Shown here in pieces: positions 10,742 to 37,672 of a stretch of DNA of 64,000 nt; within the stretch, counting starts at the first letter, position 1, and each line of letters starts with the position of its first letter. The notes under the pieces were generated by a model. It was not told the DNA's origin. It saw only the letters and a program-made list of their open reading frames with translations, and searched no databases. The stretch covers positions 248,001 to 312,000 of the IMG/VR virus record IMGVR_UViG_3300025121_000011. One strand, 5' to 3'. The position numbers and the translations under genes are program-made.

Positions 10742-10919
10742 ATGGGTTTTTGGGGTAAATAGAGGTAGGTCCCTATAGGGTTAAAATACCTCTATTATAG
10801 GTTTATAGGTTGGCACGGAACCTGCATTAAGCAGATATCATGCCAAACAGGGTTTAAGGATAGAATAAGTTTACTCTAAAAAGATATCCTCTGGAGTAAC
10901 TAATGACTGAGAGGTAAAC

Positions 10920-11399
10920 ATGATTGCAACCAATCGTTCTATTCTTGACCTGTTTCGTACTGTGGCTAAACGATGGTGGTATTTCCAGGAGCTTCGTAAT
11001 TGCGGACGCGAATCCGAAGCACGACGACTGGAAAGGGATTCCGTTCTGGAGAAAGTCTCTTCTCTTCGGAAAGTCAATACTCGTGGTGTCGTGGTGATTC
11101 GCGATCTTGGCACCTGTGGATATCCCGGTGAGGCATGGTGGCAGTATGTTGACGGTAACTCCACTGTGACCACGACCGGTGGTAGTTGGGAGTTTGTTCA
11201 GGCGGCGTATCGTTACGGTTGTCTCATGGTGGACGTGTCGCACTTGACCGTCGGTCAAAGGCTTCGCCTTCCGAATCCCATGGGATATGCCGATGATGAT
11301 TGGCGGGAAGCATTGATGAAGTTTGTGAAAGAAGTCAAAATGGAGGGTGGGGTAGTGTTCAACGACAGAAACCTCTTCTGCGACGATTCCGATGTGTGA
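10920..11399 (+). CDS. hypothetical cassette protein
   Basis: Dyad, header and GAGG RBS upstream; hairpin terminator near 11486. Confidence 0.7.
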   Translation: MIATNRSILDLFRTVAKRWWYFQELRNCGRESEARRLERDSVLEKVSSLRKVNTRGVVVIRDLGTCGYPGEAWWQYVDGNSTVTTTGGSWEFVQAAYRYGCLMVDVSHLTVGQRLRLPNPMGYADDDWREALMKFVKEVKMEGGVVFNDRNLFCDDSDV

Positions 11400-11624
11400 A
11401 GACTCAAGGATGGTTGCATGGCGACGGTTTCAAGATGCAGCAATGCAGGCCCTTACTACCTGACAGACTGAACTCCGGAAGGAAGGGGGGCGCAAAGCGC
11501 CCCGCCTTTGTTTCTGTATCTGAGTTGGCATAGTTTTTGCTTAATGCAGTTATCGTGCCAATGCATACACACCGGTTACTCTAAAAAGATATCTTCTTAA
11601 GTAATAAAGAGTTGAGAGGTAAAC

Positions 11625-11975
11625 ATGGCTTCCTATAAGCAACTTTCTGCGCTTCCTGCACTTGCATACCTGAATCCAGAAAACTTCCGAACGGAGTATG
11701 ACAATCTGCCTGAAGACGATTACCGTGTTCGTCAGTATCAGAAAGGCAGAAAGTATGGAGAAGGAGGTACCACGCTGTATATCAGCGTTGAATCCGTTTG
11801 GAGTGTAGACGGATATAACGGGAATGGATTCGTTTCGTCTTCAGAAGGTATTGGCTACCATAGCTGTACCGCCGATCTACTAAGGGGGTTTCTCGACAGT
11901 GGGATTAAGATCGTCGTGATTCGTCGTTGCGAATACGGTGTAACTGAAACTGTAATCAAGGAGGGCAAGATATAA
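11625..11975 (+). CDS. hypothetical cassette protein
   Basis: Dyad, header and GAGG RBS upstream. Confidence 0.7.
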   Translation: MASYKQLSALPALAYLNPENFRTEYDNLPEDDYRVRQYQKGRKYGEGGTTLYISVESVWSVDGYNGNGFVSSSEGIGYHSCTADLLRGFLDSGIKIVVIRRCEYGVTETVIKEGKI

Positions 11976-12272
11976 TGTGGGCAACGTGGCCTAACGGCAG
12001 GGACGCCTTTTGTTTTGACACGATGGTTGGGTCCGCTGGTTGGACCTGGAGTAACATCTATCTGGTTGAAGTTTGGTTCCTGGGTATGACCGTAGTGTAT
12101 GGTAGCCGCTGGTATGCAGAGGCATAGACCAGAATAGAAGCGGGGTTATATCGTTTAATCCGTCGTGCTTTGGCATAGAACATGCATTAAGCAAAGACTG
12201 TGCCAAGTCGAACACCGGCGACAATAAGTTAACTCTAAAAAGATATCTTCCGAAGTAATAAAAAGATAAGAG

Positions 12273-12716
12273 GTGAATATGGAATCGAAAGTGCTTTTCG
12301 TTGCGCTGTGTCTCGACGACGAATCTCAGGCCAGCCTATCCAGGGTTGCGAGGTTTGAAGTATCCCATCCGAATCGGATCGTTCTGGCTTTTAATCCCGG
12401 GATGGATGTAGAAGGGGAATACTCCGGTCGATCGCGATTGGGTGAATGGTTTGAGATTCCGTTTGATCGGATGGCGGTAGGAAACGGCATTGAAGCGGTG
12501 AGCATTATCATGCCCGAGGGGCTTACCTGCTATGAGGAAGTGCCGCACGTCGTGGTTTCTCATAGGGTTGAGATCACAGAGGTATATTCATTCTACCTCT
12601 TTGATCCTGATCTGGCATATATTGTATCATCTCGCCCGTTCAAAGGATCTTGTCGTGCTCGCCTCGGATTCGTCATGGCAGATGGAACAACTCGGTTCCA
12701 TAACCCAACGGAATAA
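12273..12716 (+). CDS. possible degenerate 2H-phosphoesterase-fold protein
   Basis: FVALCLDDESQASL..HPNRIVLAF..IEAVSI..PHVVVS resembles the two-His layout of 2H enzymes; HxT motifs are degenerate. Confidence 0.35.
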   Translation: MNMESKVLFVALCLDDESQASLSRVARFEVSHPNRIVLAFNPGMDVEGEYSGRSRLGEWFEIPFDRMAVGNGIEAVSIIMPEGLTCYEEVPHVVVSHRVEITEVYSFYLFDPDLAYIVSSRPFKGSCRARLGFVMADGTTRFHNPTE

Positions 12717-12723
12717 ATAAAAA

Positions 12724-12751
12724 GAATGCCCCGATTTTAGTCGGGGCATTC
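12724..12751 (+). terminator. hairpin terminator
   Basis: GAATGCCCCGATTTTAGTCGGGGCATTC. Confidence 0.7.
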
Positions 12752-12758
12752 CGGTGTC

Positions 12759-12801
12759 TGCATTTATGGCGTTTGCATTTATGGCGTTTGCATTTATGGC
12801 A
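12759..12801. repeat. 15-bp tandem repeat, about 3 copies, abutting a dyad
   Basis: TGCATTTATGGCGTT repeated. Confidence 0.85.
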
Positions 12802-12904
12802 TGACTATTGCATTAAGCAAAGGGCATGCCAATATTAATGTCTGCGTCTATGCGGATAACTCTAAAAAGATATCTTCCGAAGTAATAAAGTAACAAAGGA
12901 GGAA

Positions 12905-13171
12905 ATGATGCTCACTTTCGTAAGCAAGCTCTCTACCCCGACGCGATATGTCGTCCTTTGCGGGGACAAGATCAGTATGATCAAGGCCGTTCGGTTGCTC
13001 ACAGGTTCTGGGTTGAAGGAGGCAAAAGATGCTGTTGAAGCCGAGAACCCGGACATGAGGGTTGGCTTTGATATCTTCATTGTAAAAGTCTACTATCAGG
13101 AGGCGCATGCACAAGAGATTCGTGATGTCGTCAATACGTTGACGCGGGTTGGTTTCGTGCTTCCTTATTAG
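12905..13171 (+). CDS. ribosomal protein bL12 C-terminal-domain-like protein
   Basis: DKISMIKAVRLLTGSGLKEAKDAVE matches the bL12 CTD consensus KIxVIKxVRxxTGLGLKEAKDxVE. Confidence 0.8.
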   Translation: MMLTFVSKLSTPTRYVVLCGDKISMIKAVRLLTGSGLKEAKDAVEAENPDMRVGFDIFIVKVYYQEAHAQEIRDVVNTLTRVGFVLPY

Positions 13172-13186
13172 CACGAAAGAACCAGG

Positions 13187-13215
13187 AAGCCCCGGCAGTT
13201 GTTTCGCCGGGGCTT
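13187..13215 (+). terminator. hairpin terminator (near-identical copy at about 15925-15953)
   Basis: AAGCCCCGGCAGTTGTTTCGCCGGGGCTT followed by a T-rich tract. Confidence 0.75.
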
Positions 13216-13342
13216 TCTTCTGTGTATCACTCTTGGCATATAACTTGCATTAAGCAAAGAGCGTGCCAAGTTAAGATATCGGTGGCAATAAGTTAACTCT
13301 AAAAAGATATTTTATGAAGTAATAAAGAGCTAAGAGGTAAAC

Positions 13343-13615
13343 ATGGATACACCCATTCCGTTTCCAGAGATTGCGAATCCGACGCCATTTCAAGTGAAGG
13401 GGGTAAACATCTGGTTTCTTCCGGGTGAGGATCATTTCATCGCAATGGTACATCTGTCTGTATCCGAGCGTGACTTGCGAACTTGGCACTGGCACAATAC
13501 AACCTCTTGCACCGGGAAGGATGAATGCAGTCGAGACGGTTTCTCATGGTATACCATGAGAAAAGAATCTGAAAAGGGAGAGGTGCTATACATGAGTAAT
13601 CACAAGGCGCTGTAA
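13343..13615 (+). CDS. hypothetical cassette protein
   Basis: Dyad, header and RBS upstream. Confidence 0.65.
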   Translation: MDTPIPFPEIANPTPFQVKGVNIWFLPGEDHFIAMVHLSVSERDLRTWHWHNTTSCTGKDECSRDGFSWYTMRKESEKGEVLYMSNHKAL

Positions 13616-13990
13616 CTCTAAAAAGATCTTCTCCAGAGTAAGAAAAGGACATAGGAGTCCAGAATGATTCGAAAGCATAGTGTCCGTGAAGTTGTAAAGG
13701 TCGCAGAAAGCGATTTCATGACGGAAGAGGAGAGGGCATATCGAAGTGATCGGTGGAGCCGGCGAAAGGGGAAGATGAAGGGGAAGGGGAAACAAGAGGA
13801 TCGCGGGAAAAACCGCGATTTTGATGAAGGGGGGTATTGAGAAGAGACGGGGAGGGGCACGGAAATCCGTGCCCTTCCTTTTGATATATAAGGTTGGCAT
13901 AGAACATGCATTAAGCAAAGACCGTGCCAACGTGTATACAGATAAGTCTAAAAATATATTCTTCGTAGTAACTAATCGACGGAGGTACCA

Positions 13991-14362
13991 ATGCGAACCA
14001 TTACGCGTATGTTTCTGATCCAGGGACTGTCAACCGTTGCCGGTGTCAGTGGTTGCACGATTCTGATCTCTGAGATTGCGTTCCTTGAGGGTATCGATCC
14101 GATGTCCCTGGTAATCCTGGCGATTACATCAATCGTATCTGGAGGGGCATCTATCATTCTGATCATGACGCTTCCCAAGGCTTCCAAGGTAGAAAGCTCC
14201 GCATATGTGGGCGAGGATACGGATGATATTGAAACGGAGGAGATGGCCGATCCTTATGCCTACTGGGATGCCTATGGTTCCGGAACCACTTACCCGGAAG
14301 ATCGGGAAGCTATCATCGGTCGCATCGGAAACAATGGAATCGTGGTACGATTCGGAAAGTAA
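13991..14362 (+). CDS. membrane protein with acidic C-terminal tail
   Basis: Two hydrophobic segments; GGAGG RBS. Confidence 0.65.
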   Translation: MRTITRMFLIQGLSTVAGVSGCTILISEIAFLEGIDPMSLVILAITSIVSGGASIILIMTLPKASKVESSAYVGEDTDDIETEEMADPYAYWDAYGSGTTYPEDREAIIGRIGNNGIVVRFGK

Positions 14363-14513
14363 TCTCAAGGGGCTTTGCCCTATTCAATGTGGCATAGAAC
14401 ATGCATTAAGCAAAGACTGTGCCAAGTCAAACACCGGCGGGAATAAGTTAACTCTAAAAAGATATCTTCCGAAGTAATGAATAGGTGTAAGGAAACAAAG
14501 CAAAGAGGCTCCT

Positions 14514-15197
14514 ATGAAAAGCGCTCACCACTCAAACGAGATCATTGATGAAATGATCGCTACCCGAAGGGAATCAAACCCGGAAGAAGTCTGGACACGA
14601 GATGTTCCCGCGATTCACCAGAATCGCATTCTCGGAAATAATGTCACCGTGGCGGCGGAAAGTGATGCGGGGCGTGGTGCTCCGGTTCTTGATCTCTATG
14701 GATTGGTTCCAATCTGTGGGGGAGCGATTACCGATGAAGTGCTGATCTCTGTCAAGAGTACGGAAGGAGCCGATCGGATCACGGGTAGAACCTGTGTGTT
14801 CACTACGGGAACTGAGAGGCACATCAGGGCGATTCTGGCGCAACTCATGAATCCTGACGTTTCAATCCCGGTGCTTTTCGTGCACCGAAACACCACGAAT
14901 GGTCAATGGGTACAGACGTCTTTCGATGCCTGCAAAGTGGTCCGGGCCTTGTATAATCTTCAGGGTGAGGGAGATTACTGCGAAGATTCTCCTGCGAAGT
15001 GGTCGACAGGAAAGCGGGGCGTTCCAATGGTGGTTCGTGTGCGAGAGCAGATCTATAAAGATACCGTCTATTACTATCACCAGATTCGGTTCAATATGGC
15101 TCCGCTGATCGCCATGGGTTTGGTGCCAGAATGGCGAAAGGTGAATAGCCCGACACTTGAGTTGGACGACGACACCGATACGATCGCGTCAATGTAG
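14514..15197 (+). CDS. hypothetical protein, possibly PD-(D/E)xK nuclease-like
   Basis: LDLYG...LISVKS could be a variant catalytic motif; weak. Confidence 0.45.
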   Translation: MKSAHHSNEIIDEMIATRRESNPEEVWTRDVPAIHQNRILGNNVTVAAESDAGRGAPVLDLYGLVPICGGAITDEVLISVKSTEGADRITGRTCVFTTGTERHIRAILAQLMNPDVSIPVLFVHRNTTNGQWVQTSFDACKVVRALYNLQGEGDYCEDSPAKWSTGKRGVPMVVRVREQIYKDTVYYYHQIRFNMAPLIAMGLVPEWRKVNSPTLELDDDTDTIASM

Positions 15198-15378
15198 AAT
15201 GTAGGTGTAAAGAAAGCCGTCCGGATGGGCGGCTTTTCGTTATTTCATAACTAATGTGGTATAAGTATTGCATTAAGCAAGTATCATGCCAACGCATGCA
15301 TCTGGATAACTCTAAAAATATTTTCTGTAGAGTAATAAAGAACTGTGAGTAACCATCGTCTGACATTCGGGAGGCATA

Positions 15379-15609
15379 ATGTTTGGAATCTACCGTCTGC
15401 ATTCAGGCCGACCCCGGCTGCATTACCGTGGAACACTTGAACATCTACTGGTAAAGTTGTGCGCCGATTCCATGTATGCAAATGCAGCGCCAATGACAAG
15501 AGCGCGTGCATGCGGTATCGAGGGGACGATCGATGAAGTTACCGCATTCTTTGCGGCGGGTGGGAAGCGGTGGGGTGGCGGAGCGTACTACCTTGTTCAA
15601 GAGGCTTAA
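15379..15609 (+). CDS. hypothetical cassette protein
   Basis: GGAGG RBS after header. Confidence 0.6.
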   Translation: MFGIYRLHSGRPRLHYRGTLEHLLVKLCADSMYANAAPMTRARACGIEGTIDEVTAFFAAGGKRWGGGAYYLVQEA

Positions 15610-15663
15610 AGGGTTCATCTCCAAAAATATATCGTCTTAAGTAATAAAGGAACACAGGAGAAG

Positions 15664-15909
15664 ATGATGCTCACTTTGCGATATTTCACCCTTCGCGGGG
15701 ACAAGATCAGCGTGATCAAGGCTGTTCGGTCGTTCACAGGTTTGGGCCTCAGGGAAGTAAAAGATGCTGTCGAAGATGCGAACCCGGGAAAAGTGATGGC
15801 GGATTATGATATCTTCACCATGAAACTTTATTATCCGAAGGAGCAAGAACAAGAGATTCGTAATGTCGCCTGTATGTTGATGGATGTAAGTTCCGTGTTT
15901 CCCCATTAG
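15664..15909 (+). CDS. bL12 C-terminal-domain-like protein (paralog of 12905-13171)
   Basis: DKISVIKAVRSFTGLGLREVKDAVE; downstream terminator also duplicated. Confidence 0.8.
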   Translation: MMLTLRYFTLRGDKISVIKAVRSFTGLGLREVKDAVEDANPGKVMADYDIFTMKLYYPKEQEQEIRNVACMLMDVSSVFPH

Positions 15910-16084
15910 CGCGAAAGAAATAGGAAGCCCCGGCGGTTGTTTCGCCGGGGTTTTTCTGTGTATCACTCTTGGCACATAACTTGCTTAATGCAAGTGTCAT
16001 GCCAGCATATAAATAAGTATCTTATGCCGTGGCGGCAAAAGAATCACAATAACTCTAAAAAGATATCCTCCGGAGTAACTAAGA

Positions 16085-16600
16085 GTTGCCAGCACAAAAC
16101 GAGTAAAAGAAGTAAACGAGGAAAAGAATAAGTACCCGCTGGTCTCTCAAATCTTAGTAACAAAAAGAGGTGCATATGCCTGGTTGATAAGGTTCTCACC
16201 TAATGTCGTCTAAAACTTTGGTTCCTTAAGTTGAGCGCGACTTCCGAGGCATCGGAAGGAAATACCGGCAAATAACGGTTCTATGGTCGCGCCAGGGGGC
16301 GGGCCACTAAAAGAATCGTTCGCGCTCAGTCGAGAATAAGCAGGTTAAAGATACTTTTGCGCCGCTCGACAACCTACTTCTGTCGATGAAATAACCCGCA
16401 CACCGCTTTTTACATAGCCGCAACGGAAGGGGCACACCTGTTAGCTTTGCATATCCTAATATTCCATAGGGATATGTGCGGGCTGGAATCAACAGGGAAG
16501 TGCGAACCCGGTCAAGGCAAAGAGACGGAAGCCTGTTAGGGTTGATAGAGAGAGATAGGAATAAGATGCCCAAGGAGACGCGCGCTCCTTGGGTTTCTTT
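16085..16600 (+). ncRNA. candidate structured ncRNA cassette
   Basis: Full dyad and header upstream, terminator at 16569-16593, no credible + strand ORF between them, several hairpins. Confidence 0.45.
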
Positions 16601-16777
16601 TTGTTTAAAAGTAGTTTGGCATGAGACTTGCATTAAGCAAAGGCCATGCCAATGTATATGCGTATGACTAATGAATGGATAGATATTGTGGCGGCAAAAG
16701 AATCACAATAACTCTAAAAAGATATCCTCTGGAGTAACTAAGGACTGTAAGAACCCTAACCACCAACGAGGTACCTC

Positions 16778-17266
16778 ATGCGCCCTATCAAGCTTTCTCG
16801 AATCGTCATTCGCAGTGCCACCGTCGTTCGCTCTTGGCTTGAACGATGGAACGATTCCGCCCGTTCCATCTGGGAAGCTCAGGTTCCTGAGGGCCTTCCT
16901 CCGCTGGTTGTTTGCGAGGTTACCGTTCCGGGGGCATCGAAGGATGATGCGGAGAACCCCAATAAGGGGAATGTGGTAATGCTGGTCCCGACGGAAGAAG
17001 TGGACGACATGATGGAGGAGTTGCTTTTGCAGGCCAACGAGGGTCGACCGGCCACGGCGGCGGAGGTTGTCCGGAAGACGGCCACTTGGATCGATATTGG
17101 AACCGAAGACGCACCGAATCTGATTTTTTCGTTCAAGGTTTCTGAGGCTCCTGGCAGTCGAACAATCAAGGTTGCCGAGAGTGATCTTCCCCTGTTCCTT
17201 ACCGGTCTCAATCTGAGGTTCAAGTCGTTGATTGTCCAGTGGAATGACGCCCATCCGGACAAGTAG
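16778..17266 (+). CDS. hypothetical cassette protein
   Basis: Dyad, header and GAGG RBS; purine tract and hairpin downstream. Confidence 0.7.
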   Translation: MRPIKLSRIVIRSATVVRSWLERWNDSARSIWEAQVPEGLPPLVVCEVTVPGASKDDAENPNKGNVVMLVPTEEVDDMMEELLLQANEGRPATAAEVVRKTATWIDIGTEDAPNLIFSFKVSEAPGSRTIKVAESDLPLFLTGLNLRFKSLIVQWNDAHPDK

Positions 17267-17510
17267 AGAAAGAAAGAAAGAAAGGAGGGAAGGGGCGCAT
17301 GCGCCCCTTCCCTTTAAACCTGTAGAATGAAGGGCGGATATATCCGTCCTTTTCGTGTATCTTTATTTTAGTTGGTATGGTTCTTGCATTAAGCATATAT
17401 CATGCCAACGCATATTATGTTAACACATACACATACCCATGGCGGCAAAAGATTTGCAGTATCTCTAAAAAGATATCTGCTGTAGTAACTAAGGGCTGTG
17501 AGAAACCACT

Positions 17511-17557
17511 AACAGAGTTACCCAACAGAGTTACCCAACAGAGTTACCCAACAGAGT
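17511..17557. repeat. 13-bp tandem repeat, about 3.6 copies
   Basis: AACAGAGTTACCC repeated. Confidence 0.9.
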
Positions 17558-17566
17558 GAGGTTCTT

Positions 17567-17791
17567 ATGGCTTTTTCTTTTGATGAATACAATAATCGTC
17601 CTTATACTTTCATCGCGGATCAAGATGAAGTAGATGACGATTGGTCAGACGACGATGATGATTGGAGCGAACCCTCTGAAAATGATATGTGGGAATCGTT
17701 CCCTGATGATGATGACGACTACACGACGAATGACCCTGACAACGACTATTACATAGAACCCGACTACACGGAATCCAATAAGGACTACTGA
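17567..17791 (+). CDS. very acidic small protein
   Basis: D/E-dominated 74-aa ORF with GAGG RBS. Confidence 0.6.
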   Translation: MAFSFDEYNNRPYTFIADQDEVDDDWSDDDDDWSEPSENDMWESFPDDDDDYTTNDPDNDYYIEPDYTESNKDY

Positions 17792-17829
17792 TAAGGAATA
17801 CTGAGGGATTGGACATCATTGGAGCGAGA

Positions 17830-18330
17830 TGTCATGATGGTTCGCTCTACCCATGCCCCTTAAGTGGGTGTTACCAACAAGGAGTTAGGAATGTATAAGA
17901 ATAAGAATAAGAATAACTCTGGACGGGATTTATCCTGTTCACCAGCAGGATAAGCTGCTGGGAGCAAAGTAGGCCGTGAGAGCTTTGGATACCTTCTGTC
18001 TGACAGCAGAGGGCAAACGAAAAAGCAAGCCGAAAAGCTTGGTGTGAGGGATGCGAAGACAGAGACCTGTCAGGTCTGGTCGTTCACCTAAAACCCTCCC
18101 TTGGTCCGCCGTGTGTGCAGATTAACTTAAGAATGCGTGTCCGGATACGCAAACTGAGACACTGATGCGCACATAGGGTAAGCGGGCCTATTTTAGTAAC
18201 TAAAACGGAGAAAGTTAAAACAAAAAAGGAAATAAGCGATTCTGCCCTGGGTCTGATACAGTGGGGTTCGTCACTTAGAAGGTTCATAACCTCTTGGACG
18301 ACAACGACTGCCAGACCCAGGGCGTTTCAT
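17830..18330 (+). ncRNA. candidate structured ncRNA
   Basis: About 500 nt without a credible + strand ORF; perfect 12-bp long-range stem 18244-18255/18312-18323 and multiple hairpins. Confidence 0.45.
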
Positions 18331-18477
18331 TGTTTAAAGATTACTTGGCATGAGACTTGCATTAAGCAAATGTCATGCCAACGCACGTATAAGCATTTTA
18401 TACTCTGGCGGCAAAAGAATAACATCATCTTTAAAAATATATTCTTTGTAGTAACTAACATCTGAAAGGAGGCTGAG

Positions 18478-19350: not shown

Positions 19351-19645
19351 TAGAGATTAATCTGGCAAAGAAGAGACAAGCGAAGAAGCTTGTTTCTTGC
19401 GTGAGATATTTGCATATGCACGCTTTGGAGTTGGTTCTTTTGTTTTTGGTGATAATTGTTTCGATACTGTTTGTTATCACCAGTTTTTAATAAAATAACG
19501 AGGTGCAGGGTTTGAGTTGGCACAGTTTTTGCTTAATGCAGTTATCGTGCCAATGCATACACACTAGTTTACTCTAAACTAGTTTACTCTAAAAAGATAT
19601 CCTCTGGAGTAACTAATGATTGTAATCCGCTAAGGAGGTGTTTTA

Positions 19646-28979: not shown

Positions 28980-29003
28980 TACAATCTTGTATCAGGAGGA
29001 AAG

Positions 29004-29637: not shown

Positions 29638-29660
29638 ATATAAATGGAGATAGACAAATC

Positions 29661-30038
29661 ATGCCTGATTCTTTGGATCTTGCCCTACAACAGATTCGCG
29701 ACACTTTATGTGTAAGCGGGGATACACATCCCCTTTCACTGGATATCACATTTCAACTTGAAGTAGAGCGCGGAAATAAAGTTGAGGATAATGATTGGAC
29801 TATTACATCTCTGGGTGTAGTTGAGGTTTCTTTGCCGCTTAACCGCTTTCTTTGCGGCAAGATGAGTCGTCCAGACTGGATGACAGAAAGCCAATGGCAA
29901 GCATTTGCCATAGTTCAATACGAAACAACCGAAGATCCAGAGTTCAGAGAAAGTTTAGATCATGCTCTGAATTCTCTTCTCTCAGAACCACACACAGAAG
30001 AAGAAGTTTCAAAGTTTCTTGCAACATTTAACCAATAG
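29661..30038 (+). CDS. hypothetical protein
   Basis: GGAG RBS. Confidence 0.6.
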   Translation: MPDSLDLALQQIRDTLCVSGDTHPLSLDITFQLEVERGNKVEDNDWTITSLGVVEVSLPLNRFLCGKMSRPDWMTESQWQAFAIVQYETTEDPEFRESLDHALNSLLSEPHTEEEVSKFLATFNQ

Positions 30039-30223
30039 GGGTTTTATCATGGTCAAGGTTCTTGTATCAATCTGTTTCGGGTTTTGTCTTGGTGTGGCTA
30101 CTTGTGTCTTTGCAAGTGAGGTGGTTTCTTCACAAGTTCACAAGGTGGATGCGGCTGTGACCGCATATCAGAAGTAAGGAGTCCGAAGAGTAACAGCAGT
30201 CGTCTATACATGTATGTAAGTAT

Positions 30224-30308
30224 GGGGGCGTGGCGGAAAGGCAGACGCGTCAGACTTAAAATCTGGTGAGCTTAGCTCGTGTGGGTTCAAGTCCCACCGC
30301 CCCTACCA
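30224..30308 (+). tRNA. trnL: tRNA-Leu(TAA)
   Basis: Full cloverleaf with variable arm, anticodon loop CT-TAA-AA, GGTTCAAGTCC T-arm and encoded CCA. Confidence 0.95.
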
Positions 30309-30337
30309 TTTTAACTTTAACTTTATCTGAGGTGTTC

Positions 30338-30577
30338 ATGAATCCTTATATCCTTTGTCCTGAATTGAACAAGTTGAACAACTATTACAAGAATGATTTC
30401 TATAAGAATGATCTCTCTTCTATTGTTATTGTTGGTTCCGTAGTCACACTGAATAGTGGTGGGCCGAAAATGACGGTCGCCTCTATCTATAGAGGTAAAA
30501 ATGTTGTTTGCACTTGGTTTGATGGTGAATATAAGACGTGGTACGGAGTTGTATCGATGCTTACTGTGGTAAAGTAG
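30338..30577 (+). CDS. YodC/DUF2158-family protein
   Basis: VGSVVTLNSGGPKMTV..VVCTWFDG; start reassigned to the ATG downstream of the tRNA. Confidence 0.75.
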   Translation: MNPYILCPELNKLNNYYKNDFYKNDLSSIVIVGSVVTLNSGGPKMTVASIYRGKNVVCTWFDGEYKTWYGVVSMLTVVK

Positions 30578-30836
30578 ATTTACTTCAAAGCCTTCTTTAT
30601 AAAGTCTTCTTTATATAGATAACCGCTTAAGCGGTTATCTATATTTGCGTTTACATACTAATCGCAAAGCCCGGCGGCAAAAGATTTGCAGCATCTCTAA
30701 AAAAATATCTTCTATAGTAATACAGAGGTGTAACCAAGTCGGAGAAGTCCTCCCAATTACATTAATATTACGGTTACGGGGTTTGGAGTTTTTCACCTCA
30801 CGAAAGACCAACATTTTTCAAAGGAGGAATCAAATC

Positions 30837-31184
30837 ATGGATTCGGAACAGTTTGTCAAGGCAGGTGGTCGTTTTCTTCATTACCGAAGTTCTGCTCAAC
30901 GTAGAATTACGGTGGCATATCGAGTGGAAAATGGGAATATTCTCTATGGGGCGGAGATTCATCAACCAGATGGTCCGGATGATTGCTGGATAAGGAAACA
31001 GGCAAATTATCGAGCTTTGTATCGGCTGATTAGCCAGCCGGTGACTATTCCTGATGGGAATATGACAAATACCGAGAGGCATAGTTATATCCGAAGTGCT
31101 CTTATCAAGTTTGGGTGTTGCCAAAGAGAAGTTCTTTCTGTCAATAAAAATATCGCCGGGAAGGACTTGAAGAGAAGGGTTTGA
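30837..31184 (+). CDS. hypothetical cassette protein running into a CRISPR fragment
   Basis: AGGAGG RBS before ATG 30837; the last codons derive from repeat/spacer sequence. Confidence 0.6.
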   Translation: MDSEQFVKAGGRFLHYRSSAQRRITVAYRVENGNILYGAEIHQPDGPDDCWIRKQANYRALYRLISQPVTIPDGNMTNTERHSYIRSALIKFGCCQREVLSVNKNIAGKDLKRRV

Positions 31185-31342
31185 GGGATTTGAGATCAAG
31201 AGCTTCAATGGAGGGCCAAGTCTGCGGGGCTGTTTATGCTGCTTATGATAATGCTGCTGTTTATGGTAGCAAGCCCCTCTCGAACGGGGCCAAGTCTGCT
31301 GGTTCCTCAGATGATCTGATTATGCTGTTGAAAAGTAGCAAA
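31153..31342 (-). CRISPR. mosaic cas-less mini-array (type I-G-like fragment plus type III-like repeat)
   Basis: TCGCCGGGAAGGAC, 35-nt spacer, hybrid repeat, 37-nt spacer, 37-nt repeat GTAGCAAGCCCCTCTCGAACGGGGCCAAGTCTGCTGG (31266-31302), 32-nt spacer, GTAGCAA. Confidence 0.7.
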
Positions 31343-32033
31343 AAGCCATCGGTAGCCATGGAGGAGTTTGTTGGGTCAACCAATAGATGTCGATTCCGAA
31401 TCTGATGCAAGGCTCGTGTCCCGGATTTGCTTGCGGGAAAAGAGGTGGTGAATTGACCGTCTATGCGTTATTACGTGTGGCCCGTCAAACATTGGACCTC
31501 ATAGTTTGAGTGACGAACCTATTCTCAAACACACTTTACACCAGAAGAGAGTCATGCCTGGACGCAGGAAGATATACAGAACATAAAAGAATGGGCGCAA
31601 TTCTCATCCTTCTGGTGTCTTTTATTTTATAATTTAGTCTTCACTTAAGAGTATCATGCTTTTGTCCTTCTTGTTGATGCGCTGATGCCTGTATTAACTC
31701 TGATACTAGACTAATCTGTAGTTACTTATATCAATGTTAAGGCGGCAAAACTTTTGCACATGCAGGCACGAAAGCTGCTATATGCAAGAATCATGCCAAG
31801 GGTTGAGAGTATTGACGCGACAAGAATTCCTGGCGGCAAAAGCTTTACAGCAACTTTAAAAAAATATCCCCCGTAGTAACTAAGAGGTGCAGGGGCAAGG
31901 TTCCAGACTCCAGCCCGGTAGCCCCTGCCGACCGGGCGGCCAAAACGGCCTTCTAACTCTAAAAAAATATTCTATAGAGTAATATAAGGCCAGCCGCCTG
32001 AGCGGCAAATAACAACAAACAGAGAGGTGTGAG

Positions 32034-32636
32034 ATGGGTAGTTTTAAGTTTAAGATTGGTGCCGCTGCTGCTGCTCCGACCGAGCGACATCCTGTGGAAG
32101 TCATGACGGACTCCGTAAATCTTGTGGATTTCGTTCGAAACGGTGAGCTGGTTCCGGCTTTCGCCTTTGCAACGGCCGATGGTCGTGGTACGTCTCCGGA
32201 AGTCGTTCCCCTTGATGAGATTGAAGAGTATGCGGCAGTTCTGCGAAAGGCCCTTGACGAGGGCATTCCGGAGCGAGCAGAAGATGATGAAGGTTATATT
32301 CCTTCTTATGTTGTTCTTGCAGCGGAACTTCATCAAGGCGAATACACGACGATTCGAAAGGATGCTTCTGGCGAACCCGTGAAGCTGAATGGTAAGGTGC
32401 AGCGCGATGATCATGGTGTGCGGTACTTCTTCCGGAGTAACACTGGACGGGGTGCGAAAACCCAGAAGATTCGGCCTGAGCATTTTGAAGATGTGGTTGG
32501 ATTCGTTGAGGCCCTGATTGACGAGGTTCCTGGCACCCTTGATATGTGGAATAGGGAGCTTCCAAACATTATGAAAGCTCGGGCTGAGGCTGAAGCCAAG
32601 GCTCAGACTGAGGCTGCCAAGGCTGCCAACGCCTGA
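32034..32636 (+). CDS. hypothetical cassette protein
   Basis: 200 aa; header and GAGG RBS. Confidence 0.7.
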   Translation: MGSFKFKIGAAAAAPTERHPVEVMTDSVNLVDFVRNGELVPAFAFATADGRGTSPEVVPLDEIEEYAAVLRKALDEGIPERAEDDEGYIPSYVVLAAELHQGEYTTIRKDASGEPVKLNGKVQRDDHGVRYFFRSNTGRGAKTQKIRPEHFEDVVGFVEALIDEVPGTLDMWNRELPNIMKARAEAEAKAQTEAAKAANA

Positions 32637-32689
32637 TCGATACGGATGTGATTGTGTGTGATTGGGAATTGAAAATGATTTAAGATTCA

Positions 32690-32782
32690 GTCTTTCCCGG
32701 CGATAAAAACCGGGAAAGACATCTCTGCTTCCTCAGATGATCGATTAAACTGCTTTCGGGACAAGCTTTCGGGTTTGTCCCG
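32690..32782 (-). CRISPR. solitary repeat-spacer unit (crRNA-like)
   Basis: Hairpin GTCTTTCCCGG-N9-CCGGGAAAGAC resembling the I-G-like repeat, followed by 27 nt identical to 47951-47977. Confidence 0.55.
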
Positions 32783-32898
32783 TTCCTGCGTTTACGATGT
32801 CAAATTTTTGCCGCCCACGCATATGTGCAACTCTAAAAAAATATTCCACATAGTAATATAGGGCTGTAAGCAAACACCATTTCAAAGGAGATTATCCA

Positions 32899-33141
32899 AT
32901 GCGATTCCTGACCAGGCTTTTTTCCGCGATCTCTATTATCCTTGCCGCTCTGACTTCGGCCGTGTTTACAGCTATTATCACCGGATTTGTTCTGATGCTT
33001 CTGTGGAACTGGTTGCTTGTTGGAGCTACCTCTGTGATCGGAGTGGGGCTTCCTGCAATCACTTGGCTTCAGGGTTGGGGGCTTTGTTTCCTTTGTACTA
33101 TGCTTTTCAATAGTCGTTCAAAGATCGGGGCTTCTACCTGA
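32899..33141 (+). CDS. small membrane protein
   Basis: Two hydrophobic helices; AGGAG RBS. Confidence 0.65.
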   Translation: MRFLTRLFSAISIILAALTSAVFTAIITGFVLMLLWNWLLVGATSVIGVGLPAITWLQGWGLCFLCTMLFNSRSKIGAST

Positions 33142-33157
33142 CATCTGCCTGAATAAA

Positions 33158-33233
33158 GGGACGTTAACTCAATTGGTAGAGTAGCGGACTTTTAATCCGT
33201 TTGTTTGGGGTTCGAGTCCCCAACGTCCCACCA
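33158..33233 (+). tRNA. trnK: tRNA-Lys(TTT)
   Basis: 76-nt cloverleaf, anticodon loop CT-TTT-AA, encoded CCA. Confidence 0.95.
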
Positions 33234-33342
33234 TTTAATAACGAGCGGTTCCGGAAAAAGCTATCCGGATAGTGAGAGTGGCGAAGGTCTCACGAACAAG
33301 TGGAGTAGCTTCCATACGATCCTGATCCCCATAAGTTACAAT

Positions 33343-33413
33343 CCGGTGGTAGCTCAGCAAGGTTAGAGCGCTCAGACAACTGAGAAAACGCGGGTTCAAT
33401 TCCCGCCCCCGTA
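33343..33413 (+). ncRNA. tRNA-like element or pseudo-tRNA
   Basis: Canonical D-arm and T-arm, but the anticodon arm has a 4-nt loop, the acceptor stem is imperfect and there is no CCA. Confidence 0.5.
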
Positions 33414-33574
33414 TTACTACGAAAGCGGTGATGGTGAGCAGCCCGAGATCTACAGTAATAGACGTATGAGTGGATGCGTTAGAGACACCTGCGGAGTCCT
33501 TGAGATGTTGATGTAAGGGTCTCACCACTATTTAACTTTTCTAACATTTAACCCTTTTAACAAAGGAGCTTCCG

Positions 33575-33973
33575 ATGCCTCTTGAAGATAATGAAAACCT
33601 TGCCATGGAATTGGTTCGGGTTGCTGATGTGATCCAAATTTCTATTTCCTACTTGACCAGGCTTGTTGAATCCTTGGTAGCTCAAAACCCCTCTGATCGT
33701 TCAAGGAATGAAGGTGATGCCATCCTTAAGATGATTAATGAAAACAAAGATGCTCTGGCTGAGGGAGTTGCCGCTATCTATAGCAAGTATTGGTCTCCAG
33801 AGGTAATGCAAGCAGCTATTGATTGGAATAATAGTGCTTCATGCATGGAGATGAAGGCGAAAACAGCAGTTGTCTCTGCGGAAGTAGAACAACTCTCGGG
33901 TGTGTGGATGCAACAGATTGTTGCTTCTGTTCTCGGTTCTGATGGTAATCAAACACTCGATACCCTCAATTAA
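33575..33973 (+). CDS. DUF2059-like protein
   Basis: VAAIYSKYWSPEVMQAAIDWNNS resembles the family motif. Confidence 0.5.
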   Translation: MPLEDNENLAMELVRVADVIQISISYLTRLVESLVAQNPSDRSRNEGDAILKMINENKDALAEGVAAIYSKYWSPEVMQAAIDWNNSASCMEMKAKTAVVSAEVEQLSGVWMQQIVASVLGSDGNQTLDTLN

Positions 33974-34003
33974 GATTAATTCTTATACTTAAGAGGTGTA
34001 GTA

Positions 34004-34519
34004 ATGACTTGTGTAACTATGTATTTGATTGGTGGCCTTCAGTTTCTTGGGATTATAGTTGGAGTGATGTTAGTAACCGTACTCATTTTTGCCGGACCTG
34101 CTCTATTTTGGAGATGGGCTGTAGGCTTTAGGATGGTTGATTTTATCTGGAATGATCAGGACAAGGTATATAAACACGTCTGGATTCGGAAGAATCCGGG
34201 ATGGCTTATCAGGTTTCTTGATCGTTTGACGCCAGGTTGGATTAAAAAGATTTCATCTTTTCTCTATACTTGGTTTGAACGAACCATGCCAAAGTTGTTC
34301 ATCATTCTGATGGGTTTACTTGTAGTCTCTATTTTGGGATTTGGTTCATACGGATACTCTCAGCAACAAGTCTTAATTTCATTCTCAGAAGAGTGTGAAT
34401 ACACTTGTCGAGAGGATGAAACCTCTCGACTCTGGGAAGAAGATGGAGATATCAAGTGTGCTTGCACTCCAGTTGGTGCAGAGGAAGTCTTTATCCTCGG
34501 ACATATTCCTTGCGGATGA
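34004..34519 (+). CDS. membrane protein
   Basis: Two hydrophobic segments and a Cys-rich tail. Confidence 0.65.
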   Translation: MTCVTMYLIGGLQFLGIIVGVMLVTVLIFAGPALFWRWAVGFRMVDFIWNDQDKVYKHVWIRKNPGWLIRFLDRLTPGWIKKISSFLYTWFERTMPKLFIILMGLLVVSILGFGSYGYSQQQVLISFSEECEYTCREDETSRLWEEDGDIKCACTPVGAEEVFILGHIPCG

Positions 34520-34661
34520 AATGAAAACCAAGGAAGAGTTTCTCAACTCTTCCGCGGCGGCAAAAACTTAACTGCATCTCTAAAAAAATATCCTCCGTAG
34601 TAACTAAGGGGTGTAAATCCAATAGGAATCGGAGATGACAGTGTTCCGAGCGTAAGAATGT

Positions 34662-35327: not shown

Positions 35328-35602
35328 TGGAACTCAAGATCTTTTCAGAAAAGAATATTTGATATGCAAAGATTTAGAATATGGATTCATTTCTTTGCAT
35401 AAGTCTTTTTCTCTTGTCTTTACTTTCTCAGCTGCATCTTCTGAAAGCATTTGCATATATGTGTTTTTGTTGTTTTTTCGTCGATTCGCATGTCAAATAA
35501 TACATATCATACAAGTGCTTTCAGAAGATGCAGAGAGATACCTATATCTCCGTTCTCTATAATTGTAGATGAGATGTCTCGCATATAAACATCCAAAAGT
35601 AT

Positions 35603-35947
35603 ATGAGGAGGGTTGATATGTATTATATCATCTTCGAACGAGGACCAGATGCAACAAAGAAGCTTGTTGTTGGACCATTTTATACGGTTCTAATCACACT
35701 CGATTTGTTGCGAGTAGATGATTGCAAAACCTTGGCATCATTTAGTGGATACACGCTCAATAGTGATGTTCAACCTTATTGGTGGATTGAATATATTTTT
35801 CCGCCAGGGATTGAAGATCATTTTCAAGATATAACTATTTCAATCACTTCTCCCACAAACTCTCCAGACGGATTCATCGAACTGGATGATAGTGGAGACA
35901 ATCCTTTGAGGGCAAACTATTGGACGAACCCTACGTATTCAACCTGA
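35603..35947 (+). CDS. hypothetical protein
   Basis: 114-aa ORF. Confidence 0.55.
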   Translation: MRRVDMYYIIFERGPDATKKLVVGPFYTVLITLDLLRVDDCKTLASFSGYTLNSDVQPYWWIEYIFPPGIEDHFQDITISITSPTNSPDGFIELDDSGDNPLRANYWTNPTYST

Positions 35948-36210
35948 CAAATTGCAACGCTGATGTGTGCGAGCTATTTCCAGCAGACTTGATTAAGGCA
36001 CAACGCATCGGATTTGCCGATCTCCAGGTTGGAGATTTGATCTTATCCTTTACTGATGATTATAAGCCAGCGTGGAATGAGGTTACGTTTGTTTCTCGCA
36101 AATACGAATTAATGCGCGTGTATTGGAGCGTAGACAACGGTGAGCGATATATGTGTTGGGGTGATACTCCAATATACATCAAAAAGAAACTAAAACAGGA
36201 GGTTGCATGA
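35920..36210 (+). CDS. hypothetical protein (paralog of 36535-36834)
   Basis: FN..ADVCE..RIxFAxLxxGDLILSxxDDxxPA shared between the two. Confidence 0.65.
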   Translation: MDEPYVFNLTNCNADVCELFPADLIKAQRIGFADLQVGDLILSFTDDYKPAWNEVTFVSRKYELMRVYWSVDNGERYMCWGDTPIYIKKKLKQEVA

Positions 36211-36226
36211 GTCATTATATGAGTTA

Positions 36227-36512
36227 GTATTAATGGGGCCCGGCTTCTGTCGCCGGGAAGGACGAAGTATCCGAAGGATTTACGACCGAGAAAAGCTGTT
36301 GCTTCAATGGGGCCCGGCTTCTGTCGCCGGGAAGGACTTGAAGAGAAGGGTCCGAAGGATTTGAGACCAGGAGCTTCAATAGAGGGCCTAAGTCTGCAAG
36401 GAACACATCTTTAATCTTATTATATCTCTGCTTCCATAGGTTAGCGAGTCCCTTCCGATAAGGAAGGGACTCTGTCTATCTTCAACAGGGGACTTCTGCT
36501 GCCGGGAAGAAA
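36227..36512 (-). CRISPR. cas-less CRISPR mini-array, type I-G(I-U)-like repeats plus a type III-like unit
   Basis: 37-nt repeats at 36227-36263 and 36301-36337 (minus strand GTCCTTCCCGGCGACAGAAGCCGGGCCCCATTGAAGC). Spacers of 37, 35 and 39 nt, a hybrid repeat at 36373-36400, a hairpin repeat at 36440-36476 and a degenerate repeat at about 36479-36512. Confidence 0.85.
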
Positions 36513-36534
36513 TAAGAATAGGAGGTTGTAAGTT

Positions 36535-36834
36535 ATGAGTCACTATTGGAGGTTTAACTCTCAGGATTCTCATGCAGATGTGTGTGAAGATTATGGAGTA
36601 GAACAACTTGGAGTAACACGCATTCGATTTGCCTATCTTAAATTTGGAGATCTAATTCTGTCTATTGATGACGATAATAGACCTGCTTATAACTTAGTGG
36701 TTTATGTTTTACTAAAGGAAGACAAGGTAATTTGGGAAGTAGAAGGTGTTCGATATATATCTTCAAAAGAAAGCGCGGTGTATGTAGACAGCGCAGTGCA
36801 TGTTAAAAATCGAGAAGCAGAAACAAACGGCTGA
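36535..36834 (+). CDS. hypothetical protein (paralog of 35920-36210)
   Basis: GGAGG RBS; shared motifs. Confidence 0.7.
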   Translation: MSHYWRFNSQDSHADVCEDYGVEQLGVTRIRFAYLKFGDLILSIDDDNRPAYNLVVYVLLKEDKVIWEVEGVRYISSKESAVYVDSAVHVKNREAETNG

Positions 36835-37672
36835 TTGATTCTTTGGCGGAAAATTTTAACGCAATATCCGGCATGATTCTTGCTTGATGCAATATCCATG
36901 CCGACCATACAAATCCCAGGCGGCAAAACCTTTACACCAGCTACAGTCGACACTGGGTACAAAAACTTTGCAGCACAAACAATCCATGGCGGCAAAAGTT
37001 TGTCATGCGCATTATTCAACTGGATACAAAAACTTTGCACAAGATATAACCAACTCTTATACATCATCATCTTATAAAAAAAATCATGAAGCTAATACAA
37101 GGCTGTAAATAGAACGGATTGGTTAGCAATCCATTGGATTGCCTTGATTAATACTAAGGGAGAGTTTCAGTTATGACATCAATAATCTTTGGCATCATTG
37201 CTGCAATGCTTTTTCTGGTATTATTCGTTCTTCTGCTTTATGAGCTTGATACTTTTTATCGAGGACTGCTCGCAGAGTTTGTGGAGTGGATGGCACAACG
37301 ACCAAAACGACCAAAGAAATAACAAAGAAAGAATTAAAAAAGAATGGAGTTGATCTTAACTCTCAGCTTTCTTTATTTGCTGTGGTATTTATTTATTTTT
37401 AGAGGAGAATAACATGATGGAATTTTTTCTTATTCTTTTTTTGTGGTTTGGATTCGTCTCTATTCTATACTTGCTTTCTGTTATCAGAGGAAATAGAGGA
37501 GACGAAGACTGATTACCCATTTGATACCCGTTTGGTCGTAATCCTTTTTGAATAGGGAGCGTAAATGTTCTGGAAACTTTTGCCGTTGATTATGGTTATC
37601 ATTTTAACTGCACCTTACTTTTATAACTCGTACAAAGAATCTCTCATTAGAAAGAAGATTCCTGGGAATAAA

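Follow-up and report, generated by a model that had tools for sequence, protein, structure and literature searches.

The analyzed window is a 64,000-nt stretch (positions 248,001 to 312,000 of the record IMGVR_UViG_3300025121_000011) from the genome of a 335-kb groundwater phage. It contains a compositionally distinct region with 21 small gene cassettes, in which the repeated units flank small ORFan genes, and each cassette is preceded by a 37-bp palindrome of the pattern TTGGCA-N6-TTGC-N5-GCAA-N6-TGCCAA (Table 1). The region also holds an ArdC-like anti-restriction gene, which is consistent with an early or host-takeover region in which each gene has its own control. A second promoter-like element, termed header, lies in front of the cassette genes and has the structure GGCGGCAAAA-N12-CTCTAAAAA(G/T)ATAT-N7-AGTAA. 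About 30 copies of this module were found, of which 20 follow a dyad and about 10 stand alone. In 17 cases the GGCGGCAAAA box starts exactly 22 nt before CTCTAAAAA.

Table 1. Positions of the dyads and associated elements in the analyzed window
Feature	Position	Strand	Remarks
Dyad 1	10810..10846	.	Centre ATTAA; 2 mismatches; header at +27
Dyad 2	11525..11561	.	Centre TTAAT (flipped orientation); hairpin (dG -25) 10 nt upstream
Dyad 3	12170..12206	.	Centre ATTAA
Dyad 4	12796..12832	.	Centre ATTAA; upstream hairpin 12723-12752 also scores as a terminator on the minus strand
Dyad 5	13233..13269	.	Perfect match (0 mismatches); upstream hairpin 13187-13215 (dG -24.9), listed as a minus-strand terminator
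Dyad 6	13894..13930	.	
Dyad 7	14389..14425	.	
Dyad 8	15256..15292	.	Gene-facing half degenerate (TGGTAT), opposed half intact
Dyad 9	15969..16005	.	Centre TTAAT; upstream hairpin 15928-15950, listed as a minus-strand terminator
Dyad 10	16616..16652	.	Perfect match; bidirectional hairpin 16568-16594
Dyad 11	17372..17408	.	Gene-facing half degenerate (TGGTAT)
Dyad 12	18345..18381	.	Perfect match; upstream of the ArdC-like gene
Dyad 13	19517..19553	.	Centre TTAAT; identical to dyads 14 and 15
Dyad 14	20135..20171	.	
Dyad 15	21180..21216	.	Bidirectional hairpin 21135-21164
Dyad 16	22953..22989	.	Centre ATTAT
Dyad 17	24322..24358	.	
Dyad 18	26418..26454	.	
Dyad 19	28597..28633	.	Bidirectional hairpin 28556-28587
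Dyad 20	31763..31799	.	Left half degenerate (AGGCAC); a GGCGGCAAAA box starts exactly 22 nt upstream
Dyad 21	36868..36904	.	Most degenerate (CGGCA in both halves); no CTCTAAAAA header follows
Lone half-site	10192..10207	-	Full sigma-54-type half-site pointing left, at the AT-rich to GC-rich boundary
Partial match	26222	-	Lacks the TTGC -12 element
Partial match	37190	+	Lacks the TTGC -12 element
Header span	10383..34591	+	About 30 copies of the header module

Identification of the Dyads and Their Surroundings

For the identification of the dyads, the window was searched for the 37-bp pattern with at most 3 mismatches. In total, 21 matches were found, whereas none of 100 dinucleotide-preserving shuffles gave a match. 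The sequence-only reading had described 21 copies at these same coordinates, and this observation was confirmed. No full dyad was found outside 10.8-36.9 kb. The shorter pattern TGGCAY-N6-TGC matched three places outside the dyads, of which only one is a full half-site (Table 1).

It had further been proposed that each dyad lies between a terminator and the next header, which was found to be mostly right. In 20 of 21 cases the dyad is followed by the header CTCTAAAAA(G/T)ATAT at a distance of 15-59 nt. A strong hairpin with a dG of -15 or lower was found within 57 nt upstream of 12-13 of the 21 dyads, whereas the other 8 have only weak upstream structure. Seven of the upstream hairpins also score as terminators for leftward transcripts.

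The central pentamer is not symmetric. It occurs as ATTAA in 10 copies and as its reverse complement TTAAT in 7 copies, and the flanking spacers flip with it. The element therefore sits in both orientations relative to the genes.

The palindrome could also be expected to form an RNA hairpin or a DNA cruciform, for example as a terminator or a processing site, since it is an inverted repeat of 37 bp. However, only the TGGCA and TGC blocks are complementary. The two 6-nt spacers are not complementary and show no compensatory changes across the 21 copies, and the centre is asymmetric. This explanation is refuted by the lack of complementarity in the spacers, so that the element is a dyad recognized by protein and not a hairpin.

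Similarity to Sigma-54 Promoter Elements

A motif logo had been named beforehand as a point on which the sigma-54 assignment could fail, and the logo of the 21 copies followed the -24/-12 pattern. The positions G3, G4, A6, T14, G15, C16, A20, G22, C23, A24, T32, G33, C34, and C35 were found to be invariant. The GG and GC dinucleotides are exactly 10 bp apart in all 42 halves. The extended consensus YTGGCACG-N4-TTGCW was likewise recovered, with T2 and C5 in 19 of 21 copies, A6 in 21 of 21, Y7, R8, T13 in 15 of 21, T14, G15, and C16 in 21 of 21, and W17. The half-site YTGGCAYR-N4-(T/C/A)TGCW with exact spacing matches ChIP-supported sites of Salmonella position by position (Table 3 of PMC3844500). 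It also matches the sites that follow phage-encoded enhancer-binding protein genes. The agreement includes the secondary preferences, namely a T before TGGCA, Y then R after it, and TTGCW.

The interpretation given by the sequence-only reading was partly supported. The assignment of each half to sigma-54 holds. That the two overlapping halves could not both be occupied productively at once is a fair inference from the geometry, since the -12 GC pairs are 5 bp apart and each predicted start lies in the -24 element of the other half, although this was not tested. Of the four proposed roles (bidirectional promoter or switch, sink for sigma-54 polymerase, insulator, site for a phage dimer) none could be proven or excluded.

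A gene-facing half exists in all 21 dyads, 75-150 nt before the start codon. However, both halves are equally conserved, and the gene-facing half is not the better one (11.9 against 11.6 bits; 13 of 21). In dyads 8, 11, and 20 it is the gene-facing half that is damaged. In the related huge phage L026 two of three elements are lone half-sites, which point only against the genes. Whether the dyads act as promoters pointing toward the genes they would drive is thus left undecided by their orientation.

Occurrence of the Dyad in Other Genomes

The same dyad was found in 31 other IMG/VR contigs with a GC content of 32-58%, including two more huge phages. In 596 Gb of bacterial genomes it was found once, which is about what chance gives, so the arrangement is phage-specific. 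In small phages (L036, L012, L004, and L022) the dyad sits at the divergent junction of two operons, with extra single sites pointing toward the flanking genes. Small relatives (L244 and L258) carry 3-9 sites spaced 22-27 bp apart, and in L001 six dyads lie within 320 bp, which is too dense for independent promoters.

These data favor the binding of a universally conserved host factor over a phage-specific dimer, since the motif is identical in unrelated phages of different composition, since single half-sites occur on their own, and since the offset between the halves varies from 19 to 22 in other phages, which argues against a rigid dimer site.

Alternatively, the dyad could be the operator of a phage-encoded symmetric DNA-binding protein that represses or activates the header promoter just downstream, and its likeness to sigma-54 sites would then be coincidence, mimicry or competition. 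The dyad symmetry is perfect, with four contact blocks about one helical turn apart, the dyad lies directly upstream of a separate promoter-like module, and the arrays of sites resemble operator or iteron clusters. On the other hand, the distance of 15-59 nt between dyad and header is unlike that of a phased operator. The same 16-bp half-site occurs in unrelated phage lineages with no shared neighboring protein family across the groups, and the lone half-sites, the variable offset and the match to secondary sigma-54 positions also speak against an operator. This possibility is considered unlikely, but it is not excluded.

Sigma-54 Activators in Phages

At least 269 viral contigs were found to encode short enhancer-binding proteins of 235-327 aa, which are AAA+ only, carry GAFTGA or GSFTGA, match Pfam PF00158 and have no DNA-binding domain. 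In 75 of the best 80, one canonical sigma-54 site follows the gene on the same strand, in 69 of them within 22-61 nt (75 sites against 6.9 expected). In a 43.6-kb marine phage, two such sites precede the replication genes and a 1109-aa gene on the opposite strand. Phage use of sigma-54 thus has independent support. Enhancer-less activators work from solution on any sigma-54 promoter (PMC3844500). Neither the literature searches nor the GenBank phage isolates turned up a phage-encoded GAFTGA activator.

A search for an RpoN-like or enhancer-binding protein gene had been suggested as a check on the sigma-54 reading. Neither was found in the window, within 10 kb beyond either end of it, in the dyad loci, or in 29 of 35 kb of a podovirus-like genome that carries an array. 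The remaining roughly 250 kb of the phage genome was not read and the activators of the host are unknown, so that these searches do not settle whether a cognate activator is available. In addition, 114 loci with the activator motif contain no face-to-face pair. Dyads and activators have accordingly not been seen together, which would also be in line with the operator explanation.

Possible Functions of the Dyads

Each 37-bp element is a pair of sigma-54-type -24/-12 promoter elements set face to face. [quoted passage not shown] In this view, the half facing the downstream gene would serve as an activator-dependent promoter for the cassette, in tandem with the header module. The opposed half would either fire a very short transcript into the upstream hairpin, which is often a bidirectional terminator, or simply hold a poised closed complex that marks and insulates the cassette border. 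The analysis itself demonstrates the motif, its copy number, its dyad form, its restriction to phages and the existence of phages with their own enhancer-less sigma-54 activators, whereas sigma-54 binding at the dyads, mutual exclusion of the two halves and firing are inferred from these data. The host is unknown, no RNA data exist for this phage, and neither the presence of rpoN in the host nor holoenzyme binding nor transcript starts about 12 nt after the GC were measured here. The dyads do not behave like simple promoters, as seen in the equal conservation of both halves, the half-sites of L026 that point only against its genes, the dense arrays of sites in small relatives and the lack of an activator gene in the parts of dyad-bearing genomes that were read. 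This explanation is held with moderate confidence only, and the mechanism has not been shown.

The dyads could also bind the holoenzyme without being meant to fire. They would then act as decoys that titrate the scarce sigma-54 and so shut off host sigma-54 regulons, or as long-lived closed complexes that block read-through and insulate neighboring cassettes. Closed complexes of sigma-54 are stable and silent without an activator. The equal conservation of both halves, the half-sites of L026 pointing against the genes, the dense arrays of 6-9 sites in small phages, the lack of an activator gene in the dyad- or array-bearing genomes as far as they were read, and the position of the dyads directly after terminators would fit this view. 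However, the array sites in small phages are strongly biased toward the early operon and single sites point at genes, for which a pure decoy has no need, although tandem duplication could also produce this bias. Furthermore, a decoy has no need to sit before every cassette, and strong intrinsic terminators are already present at many borders. This alternative appears doubtful.

A broader and speculative version, which is possible but not likely, is that face-to-face dyads and dense site arrays are a phage-specific device that captures the host holoenzyme as a silent, long-lived DNA-bound complex, so that the virus would use a host polymerase as an insulator, roadblock or sigma-54 sponge rather than as an enzyme. 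This would stand beside a second, equally undescribed viral strategy, in which phages carry their own enhancer-less activator and use sigma-54 promoters as a temporal switch.

Sigma-54 is the one bacterial sigma factor that binds promoters tightly yet stays silent until an ATPase activator acts on it, and phage biology has hardly touched it. The findings point to a little-studied use of the host's sigma-54 RNA polymerase by viruses. If phages use it, a large set of uncultured phages would time their middle and late genes with their own enhancer-less activator, as at least 269 IMG/VR contigs qualify and the gene is abundant in TARA Oceans assemblies. Other phages, including three genomes of 260-335 kb, would deploy sigma-54 sites in forms that bacteria do not use, namely palindromic pairs and tight arrays, which points to a function beyond ordinary initiation. 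Either way, the motif gives a cheap sequence marker for transcription units and for host range (rpoN-positive hosts only) in metagenomic phages, and it provides compact bidirectional, activator-gated parts for synthetic biology.

Comparison With Known Systems

The dyads share with bacterial sigma-54 (RpoN) promoters the GG-N10-GC spacing, the extended consensus YTGGCAYR-N4-TTGCW and an AT-rich stretch after the -12 element. Here, however, two sites overlap face to face as a palindrome, with 21 copies in 26 kb and both orientations conserved. There is no recognizable upstream enhancer and no activator gene nearby.

Promoters of the -24/-12 type have been annotated in Pseudomonas phage YuA (NC_010116; PMC10914365), which is a precedent for a phage said to use sigma-54-type promoters of its host. 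The YuA promoters are single sites in the late region, the YuA genome has no match to TGGCAY-N6-TGC at all, and it carries no dyads.

The short phage AAA+ proteins have the same architecture as enhancer-binding proteins without a DNA-binding domain, such as truncated DctD250 or PspF; FlgR and CtcC are further examples. They would activate any sigma-54 promoter from solution, which removes the need for an enhancer next to each dyad. They were, however, found in other phages next to single sites, and none was found in the window or in any dyad-bearing locus.

The composite of terminator hairpin and promoter, repeated between small ORFan genes in a plastic region of a large phage genome, is similar to the PeSL (promoter-early stem-loop) cassettes of T4-type phages (PMC2839356, PMC4122927). 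The arrangement of stem-loop and following promoter-like element was found here as well. The PeSL promoter is a sigma-70 early promoter and not a palindrome, whereas the promoter-like part here is a sigma-54-type dyad plus the header. The number of sigma-70-like sites in the region is no higher than in shuffles (29 against 32.5), and from its sequence the dyad does not fit a -35/-10 promoter with 17-bp spacing. The repeated units could be chiefly substrates for recombination that shuffles cassettes, like PeSLs or, more loosely, integron attC sites. Identical dyads are joined to different headers and genes (dyads 2, 13, 14, and 15), and this mosaic suggests exchange between units but is suggestive only. 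Six population variants of the region keep the same gene order, the only length difference being a scaffold gap in a 13-bp repeat, and no recombination between units was seen among them, which does not decide whether cassettes are gained or lost between relatives. Contig breaks at the repeats are assembly effects. Recombination would not explain the precise sigma-54 pattern. This role is very unlikely to be the main one, but it could be secondary to a regulatory one.

Integron attC sites are likewise imperfect palindromes that punctuate an array of promoter-poor or single-gene cassettes. The dyad sequence has no GTTRRRY cores and no R''/L''-L'/R' core sites, it lacks the extrahelical-base architecture, and no integrase appeared among the proteins searched. 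Here, each cassette carries its own promoter-like signals and terminator.

Identification of the conserved dyad

For the identification of the repeated element, the window was searched for TTGGCA-N6-TTGC-N5-GCAA-N6-TGCCAA with up to three mismatches. A total number of 21 copies was found, all at the positions given by the sequence-only reading, whereas 100 dinucleotide-preserving shuffles gave none. The observation made from the sequence alone is confirmed by this search.

A failure of the positional conservation to follow the −24/−12 pattern had been named in advance as a result that would speak against the sigma54 interpretation. The column count over the 21 copies showed G3, G4, A6, T14, G15, C16, A20, G22, C23, A24, T32, G33, C34 and C35 to be invariant, so that the pattern was followed. 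The flanks outside the 37 bp carry almost no information. The two 6-nt spacers are not complementary to each other and the symmetry is therefore confined to the blocks that a protein would read, which excludes a hairpin or a cruciform. The central pentamer is asymmetric and was found as ATTAA (10 copies) or as its reverse complement TTAAT (7 copies), and the spacers flip with it. The element therefore occurs in both orientations relative to the genes, which are nearly all located on the + strand.

Genomic context of the dyads

The window belongs to a 335,169-bp IMG/VR contig, for which assemblies of 333,139 and 305,742 bp also exist, and all of them originate from groundwater metagenomes. No DNA similarity to GenBank phages was detected by megablast. 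The GC content is 30–35% outside the region and 43–48% between 10.2 and 34 kb. The change is sharp at about 10,180, next to a block of direct repeats at 9970–10170.

Within the region the unit consists of a gene, a hairpin with a T-run, the dyad, a spacer of 15–59 nt, a second conserved module and the Shine-Dalgarno sequence with the ATG. The second module (the header) was determined to be GGCGGCAAAA-N12-CTCTAAAAA(G/T)ATAT-N7-AGTAA, with the box starting exactly 22 nt before CTCTAAAAA in 17 cases. It has a rigid spacing and an internal palindrome around GATATC, and it looks like a second kind of promoter or operator. Twenty of the 21 dyads are followed by this header, and about ten headers stand without a dyad. 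In two cases (31741 and 36846) the box starts exactly 22 nt before a dyad instead, and a third copy at 24294 starts 28 nt before the dyad at 24322. A strong upstream hairpin was found for 12 or 13 dyads, and seven of those hairpins also score as terminators for transcripts coming from the dyad side.

The cassette genes are mostly ORFans. One encodes an ArdC-like anti-restriction protein and two carry ribosomal L7/L12-like domains, which fits an early or host-takeover region. In the search for known RNA families only three tRNAs were found. PDB sequence searches with the three large upstream proteins were uninformative. The positions of these and further features are listed in the table below.

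Positions of the dyads and of further features in the window and in related viral loci
Sequence	Position	Feature
Window	6030–6728	232-aa protein with an Fe/Mn superoxide dismutase C-terminal domain, among large proteins without a family match
Window	9970–10180	block of interleaved direct repeats of about 30 bp (ctccattgctttgatgttttcattttta / ctttatggctgtaagagatattttcattttta) at the sharp jump from 30% to 45% GC; could be a genome end, an origin or a region boundary; L014 (huge phage of 332 kb) shows a similar GC-rich to AT-rich boundary at its last dyad
Window	10383–34591	about 30 copies of the header module, e.g., 16031–16090
Window	10810–36904	21 copies of the 37-bp dyad
Window	12905–13171 and 15664–15909	two cassette genes (88 and 81 aa) with hits to Ribosomal_L12, the L7/L12 C-terminal domain
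Window	about 17510–17560	13-bp tandem repeat (AACAGAGTTACCC, three or more copies) in the 5′ leader of a cassette gene; one assembly has a scaffold gap there, so the copy number may vary
Window	18478–19350	protein with ArdC-N and a zincin-like metallopeptidase domain (anti-restriction type), as one cassette
Window	30224–30308, 33158–33233, 33343–33413	three tRNA genes inside the cassette region: Leu-TAA, Lys-TTT and a third found by Rfam only
Window	47598–49164	three tandem paralogues with Imm5-like immunity-protein domains
Window	49195–62530	RNA and DNA repair cluster: radical SAM protein, RNA ligase, Hen1 N-domain protein, PNKP-type ligase, SprT-like protein, metallophosphatases and an ATP-dependent DNA ligase
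L487 (same phage, about 4–8 kb beyond the left end of the window)	14473–17973	topoisomerase gene interrupted by an intein with a LAGLIDADG domain
L026 (huge phage of 260 kb)	1090–3260	many copies of a 16-bp palindrome AGCTTTATATAAAGCT flanking the sigma54-type sites; may be a second regulatory site
L119	3934–4662	phage-encoded AAA+ enhancer-binding protein
L123	3932–4657	phage-encoded AAA+ enhancer-binding protein
L147	3001–3708	phage-encoded AAA+ enhancer-binding protein
L370	10001–10708	phage-encoded AAA+ enhancer-binding protein
L244	1–270	dense array of sigma54-type sites
L258	2000–2215	dense array of sigma54-type sites
L001	6630–6950	dense array (dyads)
L287	7308–7406	dense array of sigma54-type sites

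Comparison of the half-sites with sigma54 promoters

Each half reads YTGGCA(C/T)(G/A)-N4-(T/C/A)TGC(A/T), with GG and GC exactly 10 bp apart. This agrees position by position with the ChIP-supported intergenic sigma54 sites of Salmonella (PMC3844500), e.g., fdhF with TGGCATAAAACATGCATA compared to TGGCATAGAACATGCATT in this study, and also with an independent set of phage sites described below. A reading of TTGGCA as the −35 element of a sigma70 promoter was rejected, since no −10 element lies at 16–18 bp and sigma70-like sites are not enriched.

Distribution of the dyad in other genomes

An exact and stricter pattern with 18 fixed and 4 two-fold positions (about 1e-12 per position; the chance estimates for the collection scans are our own arithmetic) matched 31 further IMG/VR contigs with a GC content between 0.32 and 0.58. 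Two of them are huge phages of 332 kb (L014) and 260 kb (L026). In 596 Gb of bacterial and archaeal genomes the pattern matched once, which is about what chance predicts, and this one hit lies in a phage-like stretch of a Methylotenera MAG. The face-to-face arrangement is therefore a property of phages and not of their hosts.

In the small phages the dyad is single-copy and located in the intergenic region between two divergent operons. In one abundant group this region lies about 0.9 kb from terS-terL-portal. Extra single half-sites on either side mostly point at the flanking genes, as found in the small-phage loci L036, L012, L004 and L022. No close isolate was found for TerL and portal of the small dyad phages.

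The huge phages L014 and L026 share the whole architecture of the window, which is a terminator, a sigma54-type element, a GCAA(A/C)(A/T)A(A/G)GA(A/T)A box and the gene. The GCAAAAGA box of the header is shared with L014 (GCAAAAAGAAAAC) and L026 (GCAACTAAGAAAAA).

Phage-encoded activators and their sigma54 sites

Independent support for a use of sigma54 by phages was obtained from a profile of enhancer-binding AAA+ domains, which found relatives in viral contigs. A second profile, built from the phage-type members, found at least 269 contigs. These proteins are 235–327 aa long and keep the GAFTGA or GSFTGA loop that contacts sigma54. They end right after the AAA+ domain without the usual helix-turn-helix, and they carry Pfam PF00158 (phrog_7998, “unknown function”). 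Their neighbours are phage replication genes. The gene is abundant in TARA Oceans assemblies and absent from GenBank phage isolates, where all tblastn hits for RpoN or an activator are host-contaminated records.

In 75 of the best 80 loci exactly one canonical site (TTGGCACG-N4-TTGCTT) lies after the stop codon on the same strand, and in 69 of them it lies within 22–61 nt. This corresponds to 75 sites compared to 6.9 expected. In a 43.6-kb TARA Oceans phage two sites were found, of which one follows the activator gene and precedes the replication genes, whereas the other lies 90 nt upstream of a 1109-aa gene on the opposite strand. This is a plain early-to-middle/late switch.

Evidence against a simple promoter function of the dyads

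Both halves of the dyads are equally conserved. Scored with a matrix from the phage sites, the gene-facing halves average 11.9 bits and the opposed halves 11.6 bits. This matrix is overfitted (37 related sites) and was used only to compare the two halves with each other. Where a half is damaged, it is the gene-facing one in dyads 8, 11 and 20. In addition, two of three elements in L026 are lone half-sites, which point against the genes and toward the upstream terminator.

Relatives of the small dyad phages form an abundant group of at least 590 contigs, which are podovirus-like with genomes of about 35 kb. They carry three to nine sites spaced 22–27 bp apart in the same divergent intergenic region. 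Eight tandem copies were found in L244 and nine alternating ones in L258, whereas L001 has six dyads in 320 bp. Sites packed so tightly cannot all hold a polymerase.

A search for an RpoN-like or activator gene had been suggested together with the sequence-only reading. The tblastn and profile searches of the window and of 36 dyad loci and 80 TerL loci were negative, with a working positive control, and a scan with a single protein found nothing. No activator was found within 10 kb beyond either end of the window, and about 250 kb of the genome was not examined. The profile and DNA-pattern scans of viral contigs, of which only part of the hits were examined, leave the presence of an activator in the three huge phages undecided. 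In the 29 of 35 kb examined of an array-bearing genome neither an activator nor a phage RNA polymerase was found. Conversely, 114 loci with the activator motif hold one to four well-spaced single sites and not one face-to-face pair. The data therefore describe two classes, namely activator phages with ordinary single promoters, and dyad and array phages with as yet no known activator.

Interpretation of the dyads

The half-site of 16 bp is identical across unrelated phage lineages, occurs as a free-standing unit and shows a variable offset between the halves (19–22 bp). This is best explained by recognition by sigma54, the specificity of which is the same in all bacterial phyla, and less well by a phage-specific dimer. 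An operator for such a dimer is possible, although unlikely. It fits the perfect symmetry and the arrays, but fits poorly with the variable distance to the header and with the cross-lineage identity of the motif.

The −12 GC pairs lie 5 bp apart and each predicted +1 lies within the −24 element of the other half. Closed-complex footprints of the sigma54 holoenzyme run from about −34 to −5. While the motif, its copies and their geometry were read directly from the sequences, it is an inference that a dyad is bound by the holoenzyme and holds one of them, facing either way. We therefore take the dyads to be holoenzyme sites at the cassette borders, and the interpretation in the sequence-only reading is partly supported. 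The dyads may fire as bidirectional activator-gated promoters acting in tandem with the header, or they may mainly hold silent complexes as an insulator or sponge. The sequence does not separate these two possibilities. The host is unknown, and no RNA run containing the stretch was found. The bidirectional terminators next to seven dyads fit either reading. Binding of the sigma54 holoenzyme is considered fairly likely, whereas the promoter-centred version is about as likely as not.

Comparison with known systems

The −24/−12 promoters reported for Pseudomonas phage YuA (PMC10914365) are the only description of a phage use of this kind that was found in the literature. YuA was considered as a relative and rejected, since it has no match to the motif identified in this study.

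A recombination role like that of the PeSLs of T4-type phages (PMC2839356, PMC4122927) is suggested by identical dyads joined to different headers. Nevertheless, six population variants of the region are collinear and cassette shuffling was not seen among them. The comparison of DNA contigs showed only that assemblies break at the repeats, and these contig breaks are assembly effects.

The activators encoded by other phages have no DNA-binding domain and would act from solution, as truncated DctD does (PMC3844500).
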